IMG/VR virus record: IMGVR_UViG_3300025770_000870
Location: 124,001 to 188,000 of that record
Length of the DNA stretch: 64,000 bases
Reading direction: 5' to 3' (one strand)
The translations under genes and the position numbers were made by a program. Shown here one piece after another: positions 11,975-22,009 of this stretch; position 1 is the first letter of the stretch, and each line of letters begins with the position of its first letter. The notes beneath the pieces were generated by a model that was given only the letters and a program-made list of their open reading frames with translations, was not told where the DNA came from and did not search any database.

Positions 11975-12472
11975 TTACTTAAATTTTCTAGTATTCTTAT
12001 AACTTTTAGATTCACCTACTTTCATAGCATATCTTTCATCCTCATCCATTTCATCAAATTCTTTATCAGCTAATTTGTTTGATTCACCTTCTATAAAAGT
12101 AACAACTTCATCCGCCGTTTTGAATTTTTTATTACCAACGTGAAACATCTCTGTTTCTGATGGGAAAATTATCTTTTGTCCATTATATTCTACTTTACCA
12201 TTAGTAACCTCTGATCCTAATTTATCAGCAACTTCTTGTAGTTTATTTGCATAAACATCTCCACCTTCTTCTTCCATTTCTTCTTCCATTTCTTCAGATT
12301 CTAAATCTTCAATGGGAGCTTCTTTAACGTCAGATTCTAAATCTTTGAATTCATGTTCTAAGTCACGAATAGCTAATTCATGTTCTTGTTGGTTTGTATC
12401 AAACTCTTCTTCTGATTCAAACTCTTCGTTTACTCTTTCGTTAACAAATTGATTATATTTTTTAATCATCAC
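11975..12472 (-). CDS. Acidic protein with CTS-like N-terminus
   Basis: MMIKKYNQFVNE; Glu-rich; TTAATATATA at 12498-12507 on the minus strand. Confidence 0.75.
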   Translation of the reverse strand: MMIKKYNQFVNERVNEEFESEEEFDTNQQEHELAIRDLEHEFKDLESDVKEAPIEDLESEEMEEEMEEEGGDVYANKLQEVADKLGSEVTNGKVEYNGQKIIFPSETEMFHVGNKKFKTADEVVTFIEGESNKLADKEFDEMDEDERYAMKVGESKSYKNTRKFK

Positions 12473-12509
12473 TATTACTTATTTTTTGTTGTGTTTATAT
12501 ATATTAAAA

Positions 12510-13019
12510 TTAATTATCAGAATTTTTCAATTCACTTATAACATAATCAACAAAACTATCTAACTCATATTCTAATCCATTACAAAATTCGAATATGTCA
12601 TAATTATCTTGATTCTTTCTCTTTTTTATTGAGAAAAAATCAGGTGATGTTGTTCCATTACTAAATAAAACTATTTTTCCCTCTAACCTACCTTCTATTT
12701 TCTTCTTACTAGGAAATTCTAAATCAGGAACATACATTGTCCCAATATAGTGTATTTCATCACCATAATCTTCTATTTCTTCTAATTCAAATTTGAAATA
12801 TCCATAATCATCTTCGAAAACTCTTTCACTTTCTTCTTTCACTATCTCCTTATGAACTTCTTCTTCACCACCAGAAGCGTGAGCGTCCAAAAAATCTTTC
12901 TCCAGCTTGGTTATAGAAGGCATACCATATTTAGATATTTTATCTAAAATATCATCTACCCTTTCTTTGGTAGTATAACCTTCATATCTCATTAAGTGTT
13001 TCATATTGTTATTAAACAT
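12510..13019 (-). CDS. Hypothetical protein with CTS-like start and DUF6576-like motif
   Basis: MKHLMRYE (likely start 13004) followed by VDDILDKISKYGMPSITKLEKDFL. Confidence 0.7.
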   Translation of the reverse strand: MFNNNMKHLMRYEGYTTKERVDDILDKISKYGMPSITKLEKDFLDAHASGGEEEVHKEIVKEESERVFEDDYGYFKFELEEIEDYGDEIHYIGTMYVPDLEFPSKKKIEGRLEGKIVLFSNGTTSPDFFSIKKRKNQDNYDIFEFCNGLEYELDSFVDYVISELKNSDN

Positions 13020-13054
13020 TAAGGTATATATTTCATATTGAATTCCCTTTTTTA

Positions 13055-13447
13055 TCAGTAAAACTTATGTGTTGGTGTTTTACCTAACCCACTATCAACA
13101 AGGTTTCTGTTGTGGTTACCAACTAACCAAGGTTTTCCTATCTTTTTATGTATATTTTCCTTTATTGCTTTATATACTATTTCTAAATCCCCGTCTGTCT
13201 GATATATACAAATATAATTGTTGTTTACAATATCGATATCAAAATCAATAACTTCTTCATCTGATAGTATATTATCTATCTTAGACCCTCTATCGTACTT
13301 TTTAACCTCACTTACCCAATTCTCAACGAAGTAGAATATAAATCCACCAGATCCGTCCTTAGGATGCTCTTGAGCCATTTTTAGGTCTATACCATCATAG
13401 TATTTAACATTAATATCGTCTATTTTTTCCTCAGAAATTAATATCAT
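13055..13447 (-). CDS. Hypothetical protein with internal RxxKIDxIL motif
   Basis: 130 aa containing KYDRGSKIDNIL; start overlaps the end of the upstream gene. Confidence 0.7.
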   Translation of the reverse strand: MILISEEKIDDINVKYYDGIDLKMAQEHPKDGSGGFIFYFVENWVSEVKKYDRGSKIDNILSDEEVIDFDIDIVNNNYICIYQTDGDLEIVYKAIKENIHKKIGKPWLVGNHNRNLVDSGLGKTPTHKFY

Positions 13448-13664
13448 CGAATATATCGTCTATTTTTTTATCCCTTGTTTCGGATTTATGTAATCCTATT
13501 ATATTTTTATGGAAAAGTTCATCGGTTTCAAATTTTAGTTTGAAACTATCAAATGATGATCGTGACATTCTCAATAAAGAATACTCACCTCTTGATATTT
13601 TAGACTCTAAAATCCTGGTATCCAAGTAAGTTATATATTCTAGGTATAATTCCTCGTTTTTCAT
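13431..13664 (-). CDS. Small hypothetical protein with C-terminal RDKKIDDI motif
   Basis: 77 aa ending SETRDKKIDDIFDDINF. Confidence 0.7.
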   Translation of the reverse strand: MKNEELYLEYITYLDTRILESKISRGEYSLLRMSRSSFDSFKLKFETDELFHKNIIGLHKSETRDKKIDDIFDDINF

Positions 13665-13696
13665 AAATTATATATCTATATTTAATATATACCCAT

Positions 13697-14455
13697 ATGC
13701 TAAATTATAAAGAGTATTTAAAGGAGGCCCAAGATAATCAAGTCGTTGTGTTGGATGATGGACAAGGTGGTAATATGTTTAAGACTGTTAAAAATGGTAG
13801 TAAGAACTCAATTACTTATCTTAATGCTGTTATAAAAAGGTTTATCGAAAGTGTTTATGGATCATCTGGGTTTGTTTATGGTAAACATACTGATATATTT
13901 ATCGATAATAAGATAATTAATGGTGAGTATATATCAAAGATGGTTAATAATTACACCATTTTTAAAAATGTGATAAGAATTAATAATATTAAAGAGGAAG
14001 AATCTTTTTATAATTTTATGTTATCTAATCTGAATAATATTTATTCACCAAATGGTAAATTCTTTTTAGAACAATCATTACCTATTTTAATAAACACAAC
14101 TAGAAGGGGAAATGTACTTGAAAAAATGGCTAAGGAATCCTTTTTAAAGTATTCTAAAGAAAAAGATATCGAGATTACTATACAAAACCCTTCTGTTGAT
14201 GAAGATATAAACGGTGTTGATTTCAAATTCTTATCCAATGGTAGAAGTTTTACTGTTCAAGTAAAGCCATTTACTGATTATAAGTATATTGGTGATAAAA
14301 TTTTCATAAAGACAGAAGGATCTTTATCATTGAATACAAACTACTTGATACTATGTGATGGTAAGAATTGTATTAAATTAAGAAATACACCCTCTAATCC
14401 AGTTAAAATAAAAGGTAATACTTTTATTTCAAGTAAATCTAATCTACTTATTTAA
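13697..14455 (+). CDS. PD-(D/E)xK-like nuclease-fold protein with CTS-like N-terminus
   Basis: EDINGVDFKF...FTVQVKP pattern; N-terminus MLNYKEYLKE; TTAATATATA at 13682-13691. Confidence 0.55.
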   Translation: MLNYKEYLKEAQDNQVVVLDDGQGGNMFKTVKNGSKNSITYLNAVIKRFIESVYGSSGFVYGKHTDIFIDNKIINGEYISKMVNNYTIFKNVIRINNIKEEESFYNFMLSNLNNIYSPNGKFFLEQSLPILINTTRRGNVLEKMAKESFLKYSKEKDIEITIQNPSVDEDINGVDFKFLSNGRSFTVQVKPFTDYKYIGDKIFIKTEGSLSLNTNYLILCDGKNCIKLRNTPSNPVKIKGNTFISSKSNLLI

Positions 14456-15770
14456 ATCCACCGAATATATCCATTACCACACTCAATCTTCTTGTTATTT
14501 CTGGCATACCTAATGGTTCAATAATAGAATTAATTGGTGATAGTATTGATTTCTCAAATTGTATATCATAATCTATCTCAGGAGCAAATTCAATCGGGTA
14601 AGACCCTCTAGCATAAGCAAATGTGGAATTAACTGATTTATCTTTACAGATATAATATTTAATCTTTGTACCAGATTTCATAAATTCATACTTATCTTGT
14701 AATTTCTTATCATTGTTCAATAAGTAATTATGATAAGCGGCCGCTTTAACAGCAAAGTGAGCTCCACTTATAAATTGTAATGGTAATGTTTTATCATTTA
14801 AAACTTTCTCATCATATTTATTACAAGATGATTGCATTGCGATATCATCAACATCAGCCAATTCAAATTCCTTTCTAAGACCTTTTACCAATTTAAGTAA
14901 ATCCTTTATATTGAATGTATCGGGATTCTCAAATAAATACTCTACTATCCCAACAATCTTATCACGAGCAAAGGCTGGTGTGGATGACCTAACAAGTTCA
15001 ACTCCTTTAGGATAAATATATTTCAATCTATCATATGGAATACCATCCTCATATAAAATATGTTGTATGTATTTTTTCTTAGCAATATTTATAATTGATT
15101 CTGATATTCTTTCAAGTTCAAAATCTTCTTTGTTTTCAACACCATATGATTCTGCGTGTTTATCTAAACAATCTTTGAAGTAACCCTCATATTTTATTTG
15201 GTCAACTCCTAATATAAAATCAACCTCAGTAGACCAGTTCCAGATAATATCATTTGTTAAAACTCCATCATCTATCATCTTATTTAACTTCCTATCTTTC
15301 ACGAAGTTACCATCTATTAAAACTAACCCATAATCTTCTTTCAGAAGTTCTGTAAATTCCGTGATATCTTTTGACATACCCAAATAATTTGGATTATCTG
15401 TTTCTATCAAATCTCTTGATAGTATAATAAATTTCTTATCAATTGAAGATAGATATTCATCGTTAAATACTTGATCTCTCCAAGTACAATGGTCCATACA
15501 AGGTTTGAATGAAACAAAAATTGAATCGGTATCACCATAGATACTAACATCCTCTTTCGTATCAATTGGTGTGATATCTTTTATATTTAATTGTTTGTGT
15601 AGCTCAGTATCAAGATGCCATTGATTATACCAATAATCTTGGTTATCATCATCCATCTTTCTAGTCAATTCTCTACCCTCTGCTGTTATAGTACCTGCAA
15701 CGTGGTTGTTATAAAGTATGAAGTATGGTGTTGCGAAGGCTCCATAAGAACCATTCAATACAAGTTTTAG
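14448..15770 (-). CDS. Family B DNA polymerase, C-terminal portion (second half of motif B, motif C and thumb); no usable start codon upstream of the invariant Lys
   Basis: LKLVLNGSYG (frame open up to an in-frame TGA at 15773-15771), GTITAEGR, YGDTDS, AKKKY, KGVELVRSS, YDIQFEK. Confidence 0.93.
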   Translation of the reverse strand, partial: LKLVLNGSYGAFATPYFILYNNHVAGTITAEGRELTRKMDDDNQDYWYNQWHLDTELHKQLNIKDITPIDTKEDVSIYGDTDSIFVSFKPCMDHCTWRDQVFNDEYLSSIDKKFIILSRDLIETDNPNYLGMSKDITEFTELLKEDYGLVLIDGNFVKDRKLNKMIDDGVLTNDIIWNWSTEVDFILGVDQIKYEGYFKDCLDKHAESYGVENKEDFELERISESIINIAKKKYIQHILYEDGIPYDRLKYIYPKGVELVRSSTPAFARDKIVGIVEYLFENPDTFNIKDLLKLVKGLRKEFELADVDDIAMQSSCNKYDEKVLNDKTLPLQFISGAHFAVKAAAYHNYLLNNDKKLQDKYEFMKSGTKIKYYICKDKSVNSTFAYARGSYPIEFAPEIDYDIQFEKSILSPINSIIEPLGMPEITRRLSVVMDIFGGFK

Positions 15771-15807
15771 TCATTTACCCCCACTTAAAATAAAGCGGGG
15801 GTGATTA
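15768..15807 (-). other. 40-nt coding gap in polymerase motif B, a candidate ribosomal bypass element
   Basis: mRNA reads CUU|UAA UC ACCCCCGCUU UAUUUU AAGUGGGGGU AAA UGA CUA|AAA; 10-bp hairpin at 15777-15802; removing 40 nt restores QLALKLVLNGSYG. Confidence 0.8.
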
Positions 15808-15866
15808 AAGAGCGAGTTGAAGGGCATTGTAGTAATCTACTTCCTTTTTCAACTCGCTCGCTTTAA
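15805..15866 (-). other. Long RNA hairpin overlapping the putative take-off and stop codons
   Basis: UUAAAG-CG-AGCGAGUUGAA pairs with UUCAACUCGCU-CUUUAA (6 bp + 11 bp), plus an inner GUAG/CUAC stem. Confidence 0.8.
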
Positions 15867-15909
15867 TTTTTAATGACTCGATTTTTTTTATTTTTTCGGT
15901 TTTTGTCAT
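15805..15909 (-). CDS. 34-aa polymerase leader ORF (fingers helix and first half of motif B)
   Basis: MTKTEKIKKIESLKIKASELKKEVDYYNALQLAL*; the end DYYNALQLAL matches the D-x2-Q-x-A-x-(K) part of PolB motif B; missed by the ORF track. Confidence 0.88.
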   Translation of the reverse strand: MTKTEKIKKIESLKIKASELKKEVDYYNALQLAL

Positions 15910-15974
15910 ATTTAATAAATTTGTTATAAAGGGTACTTATACATTTTGATATATAAATAAACCTCTTAAAGTAT

Positions 15975-16061
15975 ATGATAAAGGAAGAAAAAGTTTCAGT
16001 AAAAATCGGACCACGTAACATAAAATATTTTAATATGTGTGGATATGATGTTACACTTTAG
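15975..16061 (+). pseudogene. N-terminal stub of a homing-endonuclease-like gene
   Basis: MIKEEKVSVKIGPRNIKYFNMCGYDVTL* resembles the stub at 10761 and typical phage free-standing endonuclease N-termini. Confidence 0.5.
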
Positions 16062-16433
16062 TCAGGCGCAATTTGGTCAGATAACAGAACTATACGCCTA
16101 TATGGTATTTGTTATGCTGATTGATAACCACTTATATTCTCACCATCATAATAGTCGATACCTATCCAATTTTCATAATCTTCTACATTCACGTTTATAT
16201 AATTCCCATTGTGGTAATAATTCACCAGGTATAATAATAAACAATATAGGATCTGCCATTAGCTCTGTACCTCTTTTAACCTTTGTTTGTTTTGATTTTA
16301 ATTTTACAATATCAACCTTTGATACATTATCAACTCCATATCTCTCTAAACAGGTTTCTTTTATTTTAGATATGATTGATTTTTTATTTATCTTATATTG
16401 ATTATAGTAATGGAAATAGTAGTAACCTATCAC
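16060..16433 (-). pseudogene. Degenerate HNH-type homing endonuclease fragment
   Basis: KIKETCLERYGVDNVSK repeat motif, WELYKRECRRL, then frameshifted ENWIGIDYYDGENI; multiple stops. Confidence 0.6.
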
Positions 16434-16495
16434 TATTTGATTAATCAGATATATTATATTTTAAATTTAATATATAATAAAAATAACAGTATCAA

Positions 16496-16879
16496 ATGAG
16501 GTTAAAGAAGTTTAATAGTTTCAAAATTAATGAATCAGAAGAGTTGATGGAAACTCCTGTTGAGACTGGTAGCAAAGCATCTACATTAACTGGTGAGGTT
16601 ACTCTTTATAGACTCACTTCTCATCCGGTTGTTGATCTTTCTTCACCTGGTGAGTATTATGTATGTGATAAAGGTGATATCGACCCTTCTATATTAGATA
16701 AGAAAGAAAGTTCTGAGTTATATTTAATTACGGTTACTTGTGATTCTTCTAATATTGACTTAGATAAATCTGAAATGGAGATTGCTAACTTAGGAAACGA
16801 TTCTATCGTAGCAGTTAAAGATGATAATGTTTGTAAGGTTATTAGTGTTACTCCTTATGGAAACAATCCAGTAGATTAA
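16496..16879 (+). CDS. Hypothetical protein with CTS-like N-terminus
   Basis: MRLKKFNSFKINE; TTAATATATA at 16467-16476. Confidence 0.75.
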   Translation: MRLKKFNSFKINESEELMETPVETGSKASTLTGEVTLYRLTSHPVVDLSSPGEYYVCDKGDIDPSILDKKESSELYLITVTCDSSNIDLDKSEMEIANLGNDSIVAVKDDNVCKVISVTPYGNNPVD

Positions 16880-16904
16880 TATGAATCGAATTTAGTTGGA
16901 TTCA

Positions 16905-17807
16905 TTAATAGATAATTGGTCCATCAAACCCCAAACGAACATTTTGACCATCAAACACAATTGTTTCCGTTATCTCAGAAGGCTTAAATGTATTTTTGTG
17001 ATAAACTTTCATTGGTCTTCTAAAGTCTTCTTCTGGTGGAGTATAGACATAATTAAAACACTCACATCCACCACCCGTTCTTTTCCAAGACTTGGTTAAA
17101 AAAAAGTTATCACCTATTAATTCCTTTATGTGAAAATAAATATAATTCTCTTTTGAGTATTCATTGATAGGCATTAAAGATACTAAACCAATATCATTTA
17201 TCTCAACAGAGTTTGCCCATTCTAAATATTTAAATACTTCTTCTGGTGTATCTATATAATTCTTTATTAAGTTACATCTGAATTGTACTTGGTGTGGATG
17301 TGTTTGTAAATGGCTTATAGCCTTTATCTCTTCTGATGTAGGAGTTTTGCATTTGAATATCTCATCATTAATCTTATCATCATAGTGGTGACGACTAAGT
17401 TGTATATAATCATATCTTTTAGCAATAGGGTCGTTAAATAACTTCTCCCATCTAAATCCGTCTGTATTCAGTGATAATTCACAATCAGGTGCATATTCCA
17501 CACCAACATTGGACATTTCCAGAAAATTATCCCAATATAAAGTTGGTTCTCCACCAGAAATGGCTATTTTTCTAATCTTAATTCTATCTGATATATGTTG
17601 TAAGACTTCTTTATATTTTTTACCGTTCCATTTGGATGCGTCTGAGTGATATGTACAGAATGAGCACTTAGCGTTACAGAATTTAGTTCTAACATAAAGA
17701 TTTATATAAGGTTCTTCAATGGCGTTTCCCTCCTCCTCTCCAAATAAGGCACAATTATGAGTTATTAGCTTAATTTCTTTCCCGAATAATTCGATTGATT
17801 CTAACAT
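16905..17807 (-). CDS. Radical SAM enzyme of unknown specificity
   Basis: CNAKCSFC (CxxxCxxC), SGGEPT, LNTDG, QLSRHHY. Confidence 0.88.
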   Translation of the reverse strand: MLESIELFGKEIKLITHNCALFGEEEGNAIEEPYINLYVRTKFCNAKCSFCTYHSDASKWNGKKYKEVLQHISDRIKIRKIAISGGEPTLYWDNFLEMSNVGVEYAPDCELSLNTDGFRWEKLFNDPIAKRYDYIQLSRHHYDDKINDEIFKCKTPTSEEIKAISHLQTHPHQVQFRCNLIKNYIDTPEEVFKYLEWANSVEINDIGLVSLMPINEYSKENYIYFHIKELIGDNFFLTKSWKRTGGGCECFNYVYTPPEEDFRRPMKVYHKNTFKPSEITETIVFDGQNVRLGFDGPIIY

Positions 17808-17817
17808 TATTTATTTA

Positions 17818-18078
17818 TTAACAAGATGATCTTGAATATGATGAATCATCGTTTCGAAATCTCGAAATTGATGATTTTGGTGTTGGTGTTACTTTTTTAT
17901 TAATTCGTGGCTCGATATCATTTTCGATACAAAACTTTATATAAACAGATCTTTTCAAATCGCCTGTGTTTATTAAATCTTCACAAGCATCATTAAATTT
18001 TGATTCAAGGTTAGTACCTTCATATCTACCTTTGTAGAATTGTAAAAGTTTTGCTAAAAGTTCTAATTGTTGGTCCAT
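17818..18078 (-). CDS. Hypothetical protein
   Basis: 86 aa ORF tightly packed between nadR and the radical SAM gene. Confidence 0.7.
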   Translation of the reverse strand: MDQQLELLAKLLQFYKGRYEGTNLESKFNDACEDLINTGDLKRSVYIKFCIENDIEPRINKKVTPTPKSSISRFRNDDSSYSRSSC

Positions 18079-18096
18079 TGTGAATTCTTATTTTAG

Positions 18097-19116
18097 TTAT
18101 ATATTAAATTGTGAATTTACAATTTCAATAGATTTGCTTAATCTATCTCTCCAATTACCACCCACTTCTATATAATTACAATTGTACTTTTCCAATTCTG
18201 ATTTAATAACATTATAATGTTCCATCCTTTCTTCTAAAAACTGTCGTGTTCCGTCTTGAACACCATCACAATCAGGTTTCAATAGTAAGTATAAATCATA
18301 ATTACTATTTTTATATACTTTATCTAGTAATATGTTTTCAATACTTTTATAACCATTTGGAAAATACATTTTTGAGAAGAGGTATGTTGTTATATCCTCT
18401 GTATCACAGAATAATAATTTATTGGATGTCTTTATTTTTTGATTTTCCAATTCTTGTCGACCAACAGATATTGGGATAAAGTCTTCTATTCCTATTTTAT
18501 TACCATTTCTTTCAAATACAGTTCTGCCATATTCCTCAACAAAATTTGTGTTATAGTATTTAGCTAAATTTTCACTCATTGTTGATTTCCCAACAGATTC
18601 CGGCCCCATAATAACAATTCTCTTAACGAAGTAGGGTTTTATTTCATCCGGTATAAATTCCCAACTATCAAAGGGGTTAGTTCTTACTTTAGTTCCTGAT
18701 ATAGGAAATTTCTTTCTTTCTTTATCAACTAGATAGTGTTTTATACCCAAATATTTAGCAAAATCATCACCGTAATTCTCAGAAGTGAATACACAATCTA
18801 ATTTACCAACAAATTTATAAACAAATGGAACCCAATAAGAATAAAATTCATCAAGTGATTTACATTCGTGTTCATATTGTGGCATCTCACTATCATCAAC
18901 AGAGTGTATTATGACATTTGGGTTACTTTCATATATTTCTCGTAAAGATTTTACTCTTAATTTACCAGGGATTGTTTGTGTAGGATTATGACAAGCTAAA
19001 ACATGAACAACTTCCGAATTTTCCAAAGCGGTGTCTATTAAATAAAGGTGCCCGGTGTGTAATCCGTAGAATTTACCCAATACTAAACTACTTTTGTACT
19101 TTTTATCCATTTCCAT
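18097..19116 (-). CDS. nadR: Bifunctional NadR-type NMN adenylyltransferase and ribosylnicotinamide kinase
   Basis: GKFYGLHTGH (HxGH), FTSENYG, Walker A GPESVGKST, EEYGR, CDT, YDLYLLLKPD...DGTR; no HTH domain. Confidence 0.92.
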   Translation of the reverse strand: MEMDKKYKSSLVLGKFYGLHTGHLYLIDTALENSEVVHVLACHNPTQTIPGKLRVKSLREIYESNPNVIIHSVDDSEMPQYEHECKSLDEFYSYWVPFVYKFVGKLDCVFTSENYGDDFAKYLGIKHYLVDKERKKFPISGTKVRTNPFDSWEFIPDEIKPYFVKRIVIMGPESVGKSTMSENLAKYYNTNFVEEYGRTVFERNGNKIGIEDFIPISVGRQELENQKIKTSNKLLFCDTEDITTYLFSKMYFPNGYKSIENILLDKVYKNSNYDLYLLLKPDCDGVQDGTRQFLEERMEHYNVIKSELEKYNCNYIEVGGNWRDRLSKSIEIVNSQFNI

Positions 19117-19631
19117 AATCCAATTGATGCTAATATTAAGAATAAACCATATACATATGATGATACGTCTAAGCCATTTGATGAGAATAATACTATTAAT
19201 AGAATGTCATTTATAATCCAAAGAATCCAAGCTTCTATTTTCTTCTTCACTAATAGGAATGTAGCCATAACACCCAATGTCATTACAGCAGAGTCTAGAA
19301 ATGGCATATTACCACCATATTCACTTGTTATACAAAACGTGGTCATGTATAGAATAATGGTGCTGGTTGTTAGATATCCTAATTGCTTTTTATTTAACCA
19401 ACTAATAGCCAATTCTTCTTTTGGTTTGCTCCAGTTTATCCAACCTAGTATAGATTGGACTAGAAATACACCTTGTAAAACTAAATCACCAAGTAAGTTA
19501 TGGTTGTAAAAGATAACAGAGTAAAAGATAACTCCTACGATACCAAATGGCCAACATAATATGTTATCTTTTACTGTTAGAATAACAGCTAGTAACGTGA
19601 ATAAAACAGCTACTGCCTCAATAATATCCAT
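19083..19631 (-). CDS. pnuC: PnuC-family nicotinamide riboside or thiamine transporter
   Basis: Multiple TM helices; CWPFGIVG, GWINW, FLDSAVM, KKKIEAWILWIIND. Confidence 0.92.
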   Translation of the reverse strand: MDIIEAVAVLFTLLAVILTVKDNILCWPFGIVGVIFYSVIFYNHNLLGDLVLQGVFLVQSILGWINWSKPKEELAISWLNKKQLGYLTTSTIILYMTTFCITSEYGGNMPFLDSAVMTLGVMATFLLVKKKIEAWILWIINDILLIVLFSSNGLDVSSYVYGLFLILASIGLWKWIKSTKVV

Positions 19632-21613
19632 TAAATCTTAAATTTAATTGTAGCGAAGAAGTTGAATGGTGGATTAACAAAGAAGTGTCTATCTGTACCA
19701 ACTGCGTATCCATTAGTGTAATAACTTTCATTAGTTATGTTATTTACTCTAATACTTAAACTGTGTTGTTTATAGAATTTATAATCAACTTGAGCATTTA
19801 ATACCACAAAATCTGGTGTTGTGAGTGTGTTCTCCATATCAATATAAGACTCTGAGTGGTACTTCACATCAAATCCAACTCTTATTCTATCTTTTGAATC
19901 TTTAATCACCACACCTTGGTTAATTATCAAATTAGGTGTGTATAATGGACTAAATTCTTTCCCATCATCATTAATTCTGTTATAAGAGTATGATGATGTA
20001 TTAACTAATAATAAGTTAATTTTCTTTTTACTAAATAAACTTAAAGTCATATCTAATTCAATACCACTTCTAAAAGAGTTTTCAACATTAGTCATTAACG
20101 GTAAACCATTTGAACCAATTGCTCCTAATAATGTTATTTCATTTTTGAAATCCATATAGTATAGATTACCTTGTAACTTAAAGTTATCTAATGTTATATT
20201 AGTACCTAATTCATAATCAACAACCGATTCTGGTTTAACATCTATGTAACTAATAGGATCATCTTCTCCCATAAAAATATCATTTCTTGTTGGTTCTCTT
20301 TGTGATTGACCAACAGAAGCATAGAAGTTATAGTGTTTACATTTCGTGAACATTATACCACCTTTTGGGTTGAAGAATGTCCATTCAAATGGTGCCATAT
20401 CCATAGTACCTTGATACTTGAAATCAACGTATCTAACTTGAGCATCTCCGAAAAGAGTAAACTTCTTTATATCATATCCGAATTTAACAAATGATGATAC
20501 TTCGTTTTTAAGTCCTTTATTAGAATATAGTTCATCTGTGTTTGCTAATACAGTCATAGCATGTCGTCTATCATACATATTACCACTAACACCAATATTC
20601 AATCTATATTTATTACCAGTTAAGTTATAGTTAGAGGTTAATCCATAGAAGTTAGAACCTAAATTGAAGTTAAGAACATCATCCCCTCCACCAAGTGGTA
20701 GTAAATCTAATCCCCAATCTCCATCTAATCTATTATAGAAAGCGGTAGTCGTTAAATTTGACTTGTTAAAAAAGTGTTTGTGTTTTAAGATAACCATACT
20801 TTGTGTAAAGTCGTCATTTTCTCTAGTAGTATTATAGTTAGTTCTTGGTTCTGATTTTATATCATCTTCTGAAACTGCGAACCAAGCCATTTCATTAGTT
20901 GTGTGTCCATTGAATGCTGTTATTTTAACAAAATCCTTTTCTCCATAATAACCACCACTTAAAAAGAATGATTGTCCTTCACCACCTGAGTTATATTTGT
21001 ATCCATCACTCGCGTAATTTGAATATCTAGTATAAAAGGCTGTTTTATTTTTTAGTAATCCTGTTGAGTTTTCAATACTAACTCTATAAGTATTAAATGA
21101 TCCATATCCAATTTGTCCTTCTGTTCCTTTCTTTAATCCCGTTGGTGATTCAAAATTAATAGAACCAGCATATGAGGAAACACCGTTTGTTGATGTACCA
21201 ACACCACGTTGTATCTGCATTGACCTAATTGAGTTTGTAAAATCTGGGTAATTTGAGAAATATACACCTTGGTCCTCTGGTTCATTAAGAGGAACCCCAT
21301 CGAGTGTCATATTAATTCTAGTTTGGTCAATACCTCTCAATCTAAAGTAAGTATATCCCATATTGTGACCGCCATCTGTTGATGATGTTACACTTGGTGT
21401 TGTGTTTAATAACAACGGTAATTCTTGTGTATGATACATAACATCTATATCATCTTTACTGATTGTTTTCTGAGTGACTGGTGTTTTAGATCCAGCTCTA
21501 ATTCCTTGTATAGTAACTTCTTCAATTTGCACCATTGATGTGTCAACCTTTAGAGTATCCTGTGAATACGATGTTGATGTTGCTAATAAAAATAAAAATA
21601 GTAATTTCTTCAT
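19631..21613 (-). CDS. TonB-dependent outer-membrane receptor (Bacteroidota vitamin-uptake type)
   Basis: Signal peptide; plug with GYTYFRLRGIDQTRIN...QIQRGVGTSTNG; beta-barrel ending in alternating aromatic residues; 1-nt overlap with pnuC. Confidence 0.92.
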   Translation of the reverse strand: MKKLLFLFLLATSTSYSQDTLKVDTSMVQIEEVTIQGIRAGSKTPVTQKTISKDDIDVMYHTQELPLLLNTTPSVTSSTDGGHNMGYTYFRLRGIDQTRINMTLDGVPLNEPEDQGVYFSNYPDFTNSIRSMQIQRGVGTSTNGVSSYAGSINFESPTGLKKGTEGQIGYGSFNTYRVSIENSTGLLKNKTAFYTRYSNYASDGYKYNSGGEGQSFFLSGGYYGEKDFVKITAFNGHTTNEMAWFAVSEDDIKSEPRTNYNTTRENDDFTQSMVILKHKHFFNKSNLTTTAFYNRLDGDWGLDLLPLGGGDDVLNFNLGSNFYGLTSNYNLTGNKYRLNIGVSGNMYDRRHAMTVLANTDELYSNKGLKNEVSSFVKFGYDIKKFTLFGDAQVRYVDFKYQGTMDMAPFEWTFFNPKGGIMFTKCKHYNFYASVGQSQREPTRNDIFMGEDDPISYIDVKPESVVDYELGTNITLDNFKLQGNLYYMDFKNEITLLGAIGSNGLPLMTNVENSFRSGIELDMTLSLFSKKKINLLLVNTSSYSYNRINDDGKEFSPLYTPNLIINQGVVIKDSKDRIRVGFDVKYHSESYIDMENTLTTPDFVVLNAQVDYKFYKQHSLSIRVNNITNESYYTNGYAVGTDRHFFVNPPFNFFATIKFKI

Positions 21614-21629
21614 ATTTTTTGTTATTGAT

Positions 21630-21989
21630 TTATATTGATTGATTTATTATTGATTCTCTGTTTTCTGATTTAAGATATTCGAAAAAGTCTTTTAGTAAAA
21701 TATTTTCTGTTCCATCATACTCATATTCACTACCACTTCCTATATTCCCATAATTTATATTTGAGTTTTTAAACTCATTAAATTTTTCTTCTAATTTCTT
21801 ACTCATTTCAGTGGATGTATGGATATCAATTGTATTGTCTCTTTCATCTAAGTAAAAAGTGAACAATTTGTTATCTAATCCAGTTCTTTTGTGGTGTACC
21901 GAGACGAATCTTTTACCAAGTACCTCAATATGGTCTGAGTTATCACATTTAAGTTCAATTCCGTAAAATGGTAAGTATAAATTTATCAT
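21630..21989 (-). CDS. Hypothetical protein
   Basis: 119 aa ending SENRESIINQSI, a variant of the RDxKI tag. Confidence 0.7.
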   Translation of the reverse strand: MINLYLPFYGIELKCDNSDHIEVLGKRFVSVHHKRTGLDNKLFTFYLDERDNTIDIHTSTEMSKKLEEKFNEFKNSNINYGNIGSGSEYEYDGTENILLKDFFEYLKSENRESIINQSI

Positions 21990-22009
21990 ATTAGATTAAA
22001 ATTATTTGA

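Follow-up and report, generated by a model that had tools for sequence, protein, structure and literature searches.

A selected upstream stem-loop in a putative ribosome-hop cassette that interrupts the DNA polymerase gene of a marine phage

The window analysed here, a stretch of 64,000 nucleotides of DNA (positions 124,001 to 188,000 of the IMG/VR virus record IMGVR_UViG_3300025770_000870), is part of a 242-kb viral record with a GC content of 30%. The family-B DNA polymerase of this virus is split into two genes. The N-terminal half (512 aa; exonuclease domain and motif A, ending in ...DILDQIAELEGEI) is a separate gene located 96 kb away and outside the window, at 234401-235939 (+) of the whole genome (G000:C1; equivalent to L003:394-1932, where L followed by a number denotes a locus in our collection), so that the enzyme is divided at the tip of the fingers. 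The C-terminal half lies on the minus strand of the window at 14448-15909 and is itself interrupted. An ATG at 15909 opens the first 34 codons (ORF1, 15808-15909, MTKTEK...DYYNALQLAL), which end in the codon CUU (Leu, 15808-15810) followed directly by a UAA stop (15805-15807). After a coding gap of 37 nt (15771-15807) and a CUA triplet (15768-15770), a different frame continues from AAA at 15767 with KLVLNGSYG, which is motif B, and then with YGDTDS and the thumb (ORF2, 14448-15767, ending in a stop at 14448-14450). Joined together, the two parts give ...QLAL-KLVLNGSYG.... Further upstream (16905-21613, minus strand), inspection of the translations by eye suggests a radical-SAM protein (CNAKCSFC), a NadR-like nicotinamide-nucleotide enzyme, a PnuC-like transporter and a TonB-dependent-receptor-like protein, which are unusual cargo for a phage.

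The 40 nt formed by the gap and the CUA triplet are closed by stops in all three reading frames. The gap contains a 10-bp hairpin with a C5/G5 clamp, ACCCCCGCUU-UAUUUU-AAGUGGGGGU (15777-15802, minus strand, -18.1 kcal/mol), which starts 5 nt after the CUU codon. This is the only C5/G5 hairpin in the 242-kb genome. It is not terminator-like, as no terminator-like sites were found in 15600-16500. A scan against Rfam over 12000-22000 at E <= 1 gave only a chance CRISPR-repeat match elsewhere.

A second and larger hairpin is built into the codons of ORF1. On the minus strand, UUAAAG-CG-AGCGAGUUGAA (15866-15848; codons I-K-A-S-E-L-K) pairs with UUCAACUCGCU-CUUUAA (15821-15805; codons L-Q-L-A-L plus the stop), forming 11 bp, a CG bulge and then 6 bp, as described in an earlier note on this sequence. 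The 3' arm covers both the CUU and the UAA codons. A small apical hairpin, GUAG-AUUA-CUAC (15829-15840, with the stem at 15840-15837 and 15832-15829), is predicted in the loop for the window. RNAfold recovers the 17-bp helix as the minimum-energy structure. The energy of the 62-nt element is -23.7 kcal/mol against -8.9 +/- 2.4 for dinucleotide shuffles (z = -6.25, 0/200), whereas that of 15750-15915 (166 nt) is -49.9 against -23.8 +/- 3.5 (z = -7.4, 0/200). The earlier note had also pointed to GC-rich codons in the leader as a sign of selection on RNA structure, and our analysis agrees. The stem is built from GCG, AGC, GAG, TTG, GCC, CTC and CTT, which account for 8, 3.5, 28, 13, 6, 2.3 and 16% of their synonymous families in the long ORFs of this genome. 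Resampling of synonymous codons from the codon usage of the genome for the same 34-residue peptide gave -10.2 +/- 2.9 kcal/mol against -25.1 observed, with 0 of 1000 recodings as low.

A scan of viral contigs with the C-terminal half gave 58 loci at 56-100% identity. The sequence described above is not an assembly artefact, since it occurs identically in three other assemblies and at full word share in eight marine runs from six studies. Many of the related loci read straight through the interrupted region in one frame (MTKEEK...DYYNALQLALKLVLNGSYG; MTKEEKIKKIE.LKKKAS.LKKEVDYYNALQLALKLVLNGSYG), and so do the two closest GenBank genomes, which are uncultured phages of 634 kb and 642 kb (a megablast search against GenBank phages found only the insert-free 634-kb relative). 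An uninterrupted relative aligns over exactly this stretch to motif B of Sulfolobus solfataricus PolB1 (1s5j), so ORF1 and ORF2 are two parts of one conserved helix. The other loci carry an insert, but not always at the same codon. Inserts are found after Ala (GCU to GCA/GCU), Leu (CUU/CUC to CUA, the class of the window), Val (GUU to GUA/GUU), Gly (GGU to GGU), Ser (UCU to UCA) and Tyr. The 29 non-redundant inserts share one plan, in which a 5-6-nt spacer usually holding a stop is followed by a hairpin of -17 to -31 kcal/mol with a C/G clamp, an A-rich spacer of 4-10 nt and a final triplet. The hairpin begins 5-6 nt after the last codon read in nearly all of them.

The lengths of these inserts are 36-48 nt and fall in all three phases (13/8/8). 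Twenty-six of them have a frame-0 stop within the gap, 23 of these within two codons of the take-off codon. It is therefore very unlikely that the gap is translated by a frameshift, by stop read-through or under a different genetic code (for example TGA = Trp). A few relatives do have an open frame across the gap. However, most gaps carry stops in the frames needed, with different stop codons, long genes are intact under table 11, and translating the gap would put 12-16 foreign residues inside the motif B helix.

Interestingly, the final triplet is synonymous with the last codon read in 20 of 29 inserts, namely in all 20 inserts at the five non-Tyr sites. At the nine Tyr-site inserts (L018, L021-L024, L028, L030, L033 and L056, inserted after the Tyr of NGSY|G), the triplet before the resumed GGA is UAA, AAC, AGC, CAA or GAC and never a Tyr codon. 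Strict re-pairing cannot therefore be the whole rule, and landing at the Tyr sites is unexplained.

The earlier note had proposed that presence of the same stem in insert-free relatives would refute its interpretation, and the stem passed this test. In 15 leaders with an insert at the Leu or Ala site, 88% of cells for the 14 pairs tested are paired, against 30-40% when the partner strand is slid. Five pairs have changed on both sides, and the covariation score was reached by 0 of 500 shuffles. RNAalifold independently finds the 7-bp core with 4 covarying pairs. Some of the compensatory changes alter both encoded peptides together (ASSLK with LQTAL; ANQLK; ELQ giving UUGCAA/UUGCAA). In 13 non-redundant insert-free leaders the same pairs are 53% paired, which equals the shuffled value, with no covariation. 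This holds even where the amino acids are the same, as in L035, which uses TCC GAA CTA for S-E-L. However, insert-free L010, a sister of insert-bearing L036 and of the clade of the window, keeps an 8-bp residue of the stem (AAGCAAGC/GCUUGCUU; -13.6 kcal/mol), which looks like recent loss of the insert with the stem decaying.

Loci with inserts further downstream lack this stem but have another one, whose 3' arm ends at their own take-off codon. A test based on the largest helix in the minimum-energy structure was too noisy to show whether the stem tracks the site. Therefore, the gap was removed in silico and the 20-nt window with the best duplex partner in the upstream leader was determined for each locus. 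The best window is the one ending at codons Ala/Leu in 16 of 16 Ala/Leu loci (median -22.2 kcal/mol; insert-free -6.0), the Val window in 2 of 2 Val loci (-20.3 against -6.3) and the downstream window in 9 of 11 Gly/Ser/Tyr loci (-15.4 against -7.4). Thus, in 27 of 29 loci the strongest pairing partner belongs to the 20 nt ending at the locus's own take-off zone. The two exceptions, the Tyr-site loci L024 and L028, lack a clear 5' stem and have an extended gap hairpin. A fixed-register covariation test of the Tyr-site stem was not significant (71.7% paired, shuffles equal), because the members use different registers. Overall, the 5' region folds at a median of -26.6 kcal/mol in 39 insert-bearing loci and -15.1 in 17 insert-free ones (Mann-Whitney p = 2e-8). 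In six phylogenetically independent pairs the difference goes the same way in five or six and never the other way. As leaders travel with inserts as cassettes, the number of truly independent origins of each stem is smaller than the number of loci.

On a tree of the downstream gene the insert states are scattered and need at least 11 gains or losses. L013 (Ala site) and L018 (Tyr site) are about 99-100% identical from about 90 nt after the anchor onward, 33-75% identical in the leader and insert, and unrelated further upstream, so the recombination boundary lies just 3' of the insert. Directly upstream and divergently oriented, 19 insert-bearing loci of all six site classes carry an ORF of 290-390 residues that matches DUF7487 and PHROG families annotated as homing endonuclease, and no insert-free locus has it. 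The window keeps only remnants of this gene: about 28 residues of the N-terminus at 15975-16058 (+), divergent from the polymerase gene as in relatives, and an inverted, frameshifted piece (residues about 190-320) at 16118-16433 (-), which includes the 86-aa ORF 16173-16433 (DUF7487, 6e-7; phrog_3339 'homing endonuclease', 7.7e-6). A different homing endonuclease (GIY-YIG plus NUMOD3; L049:2023-2784 (-), also L031/L032/L034) occupies the upstream position in one insert-bearing and one insert-free lineage, and L036 has a DNA methylase there. A phage-encoded translation initiation factor IF3 (L012:2119-2655 (+); Pfam IF3_N and IF3_C, 3.9e-26) lies next to the polymerase C-half in many relatives, both insert-bearing and insert-free, with homologues upstream of the C-half in 12 other loci. 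The C-half gene of relatives also holds further large interruptions, namely an intein-like insert ending ...VHNS at motif C (L060-L062) and gaps of about 1.6-2.0 kb after residue ~75 (L044, L048, L052) and of about 0.4-0.5 kb (L036, L038, L039, L050); the gene is a hot spot for mobile elements.

It is conceivable that no recoding occurs, and that the gene is broken or works in three pieces, with a 34-residue peptide and a downstream fragment started after the gap. The polymerase is already split into two genes, and synonymous recoding near homing sites is known to protect against cleavage (Manning & Atkins), in which case the complementarity would be a by-product of an endonuclease-resistant leader. 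However, this appears highly improbable. In the window there is no in-frame AUG, GUG or UUG between the gap and the motif B lysine, and the first possible start would delete that lysine. At the Tyr sites the break falls inside NGSY|G, and both ORFs are intact in 29 diverged insert-bearing lineages. Moreover, immunity recoding does not predict two arms 26 or more nt apart that co-vary and move with the insert.

The anatomy described above is that of programmed translational bypassing. We read the hairpin, with fair though not high confidence, as the 5' stem-loop of a small mobile bypass cassette in motif B of the C-terminal half of a split family-B DNA polymerase, in a marine jumbo phage that probably infects Bacteroidota. 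That the stem is a selected RNA structure specific to the insert rests on the evidence above, whereas bypassing itself and the role of the stem in it are inferred from comparative anatomy only. In this reading, ribosomes translate 34 codons and stall on CUU with UAA in the A site. Peptidyl-tRNA(Leu) then lets go, the ribosome slides over 37 nt, re-pairs at CUA and resumes at AAA, which would give the junction peptide EVDYYNALQLALK. No tRNA for Leu is encoded by the phage, the only tRNA gene being Arg-TCT. It is also inferred that the insert exists because it destroys the target site of the neighbouring homing endonuclease, so that endonuclease, leader and insert spread together.

The earlier note had suggested that the stem must be melted when a ribosome sits on CUU-UAA, and this follows from the mRNA footprint of the ribosome. 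At take-off the 3' arm lies inside the ribosome, while the 5' arm, 38-56 nt upstream, is free behind it. Once the codon-anticodon pairing breaks, zipping of the 17-bp helix at the mRNA exit would pull mRNA through and block backward sliding, which is the role proposed for the T4 gene 60 5' stem-loop (PMC5462505; PMC11194080). The 17 bp of the stem plus the ~26-nt gap hairpin refolding behind the ribosome roughly equal the 40 nt to be crossed, although this arithmetic is only suggestive. This forward push, and the further suggestion in the note that the stem regulates polymerase dosage, remain inferences.

It is possible, although less likely, that the stem belongs to the bypass cassette but works otherwise than by pushing. 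It might pause or space ribosomes before take-off, keep trailing ribosomes away, set the fraction of ribosomes that hop, or hold a three-way junction that presents the landing site. A possible closing helix, with moderate support, is predicted between AGUCAUU (15878-15872) and AAUGACU (15775-15769, including the first two bases of the landing codon), and it would make such a junction with the 5' stem and the gap hairpin, bringing the take-off and landing codons together. In the Leu class it is paired at 5.7 of 7 positions in register, against 1.6-3.8 when slid, with compensatory changes in L055 (AGUCUCUAA/UUAGAGACU) and L040. The same GUCAU can alternatively pair with the AUGAC of the start codon. 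Sequence data alone do not distinguish these roles from the forward pull, but the 3' arm ending at the take-off codon in every site class fits refolding at the mRNA exit best.

The predicted junction also raises the possibility that the 40 nt are removed from the RNA as a mini-intron, either self-cleaving or recognised by an RNA endonuclease and ligase, and the Tyr-site inserts lack the matched landing triplets that excision would not need. However, we consider this doubtful. No Rfam family matches, ribozymes and introns included, in the region scanned, and at 40 nt the insert is far below group I/II intron size. Excision gives no reason for landing triplets that stay synonymous in 20 of 20 inserts at five sites, and a stop within two codons of take-off, present in most inserts, has no role in splicing. 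Four metatranscriptome runs hold only sparse contigs from relatives 90-97% identical, none of which spans the insert or showed a joint, and these data are too sparse to exclude removal. One contig (run X17, record 4; matching 15718-15767) from a relative about 92% identical continues from ORF2 straight into an insert-free leader with different, non-stem codons. We read this as an insert-free strain and not as splicing, and insert-free strains therefore co-occur in the sea with the insert-bearing one.

Comparison with the T4 gene 60 bypass cassette (MobA element) reveals a similar arrangement. In both, an essential replication gene is split next to a homing endonuclease, here decayed as mobA is in T4, where the bypass insert protects the carrier's DNA from the endonuclease. 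A new short ORF1 (34 codons here, 46 in T4) ends in a take-off codon followed by a stop, the gap has a stable hairpin near its 5' end and an A/U-rich 3' part, the landing triplet matches the take-off codon, and an upstream stem-loop has its 3' arm inside the ribosome at take-off. However, there is no sequence homology. The host gene is PolB, hit in motif B, and not topoisomerase II (gene 39/60, at Gly46 or Asp45), and the endonuclease is of the DUF7487 type (PHROG 3339/12131) with no HNH domain found, in contrast to the HNH MobA. The gap is 36-48 nt and not 50, and there are six insertion sites rather than two. The gap hairpin starts after the take-off codon instead of containing it, so the A-site hairpin mechanism may not apply. 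The leader peptide is ordinary polymerase sequence and not a dedicated nascent-peptide signal. Genes in this genome have almost no Shine-Dalgarno motif upstream (GGAG 1%, AGGA 3%; the upstream region is A-rich), consistent with a Bacteroidota host as for the nearest cultured relatives (Flavobacterium, Tenacibaculum and Chryseobacterium phages). A gene-60-like anchor is therefore doubtful, and an SD-like role for the G-run 5-9 nt before the landing triplet was set aside. Interestingly, the 5' stem-loop here is conserved, co-varies and tracks the site, whereas among gene 60 homologues it is reported as not conserved.

The byp elements of Magnusiomyces capitatus mitochondria, as summarised in the literature, are likewise short (27-55 nt) GC-rich hairpin inserts in an AT-rich genome that interrupt conserved coding sequence at many sites, with mostly matched take-off and landing triplets, an AU-rich 3' part and no SD involved. 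However, those are mitochondrial, with 81 inserts in 12 genes and no endonuclease partner reported, while here there is one insert per genome, always in one 30-nt stretch of one gene, with a site-specific 5' stem. The present cassette is homologous neither to gene 60 nor to the byps.

Long-distance programmed bypassing in phages has rested on T4 gene 60 and its homologues in topoisomerase genes. A 2022 survey stated that no similar case was known in other phages, and in the literature searched we found no report of bypassing in a phage polymerase. It is more likely than not that these inserts represent a second family of programmed bypass cassettes in phages, non-homologous to gene 60 and driven essentially by mRNA structure. 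In this view, homing endonucleases drop a portable module (5' stem, 6-nt spacer with a stop, C5/G5 hairpin, A-rich spacer and landing triplet) at any of at least six codons of PolB motif B, and each time the upstream coding sequence is recoded, even at the amino-acid level, to build a new 5' stem ending at the new take-off codon. It would work in hosts that do not use Shine-Dalgarno pairing and without a dedicated nascent-peptide signal. If this reading is right, the loci form an independent natural series of about 29 variants at six sites, in which the 5' stem-loop is the feature that most clearly follows the take-off site, and the long-standing question of which mRNA elements are sufficient for a ribosome to slide 40 nt would become directly testable. 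It also matters for annotation, as these polymerase genes will be called as broken or truncated in jumbo-phage genomes.
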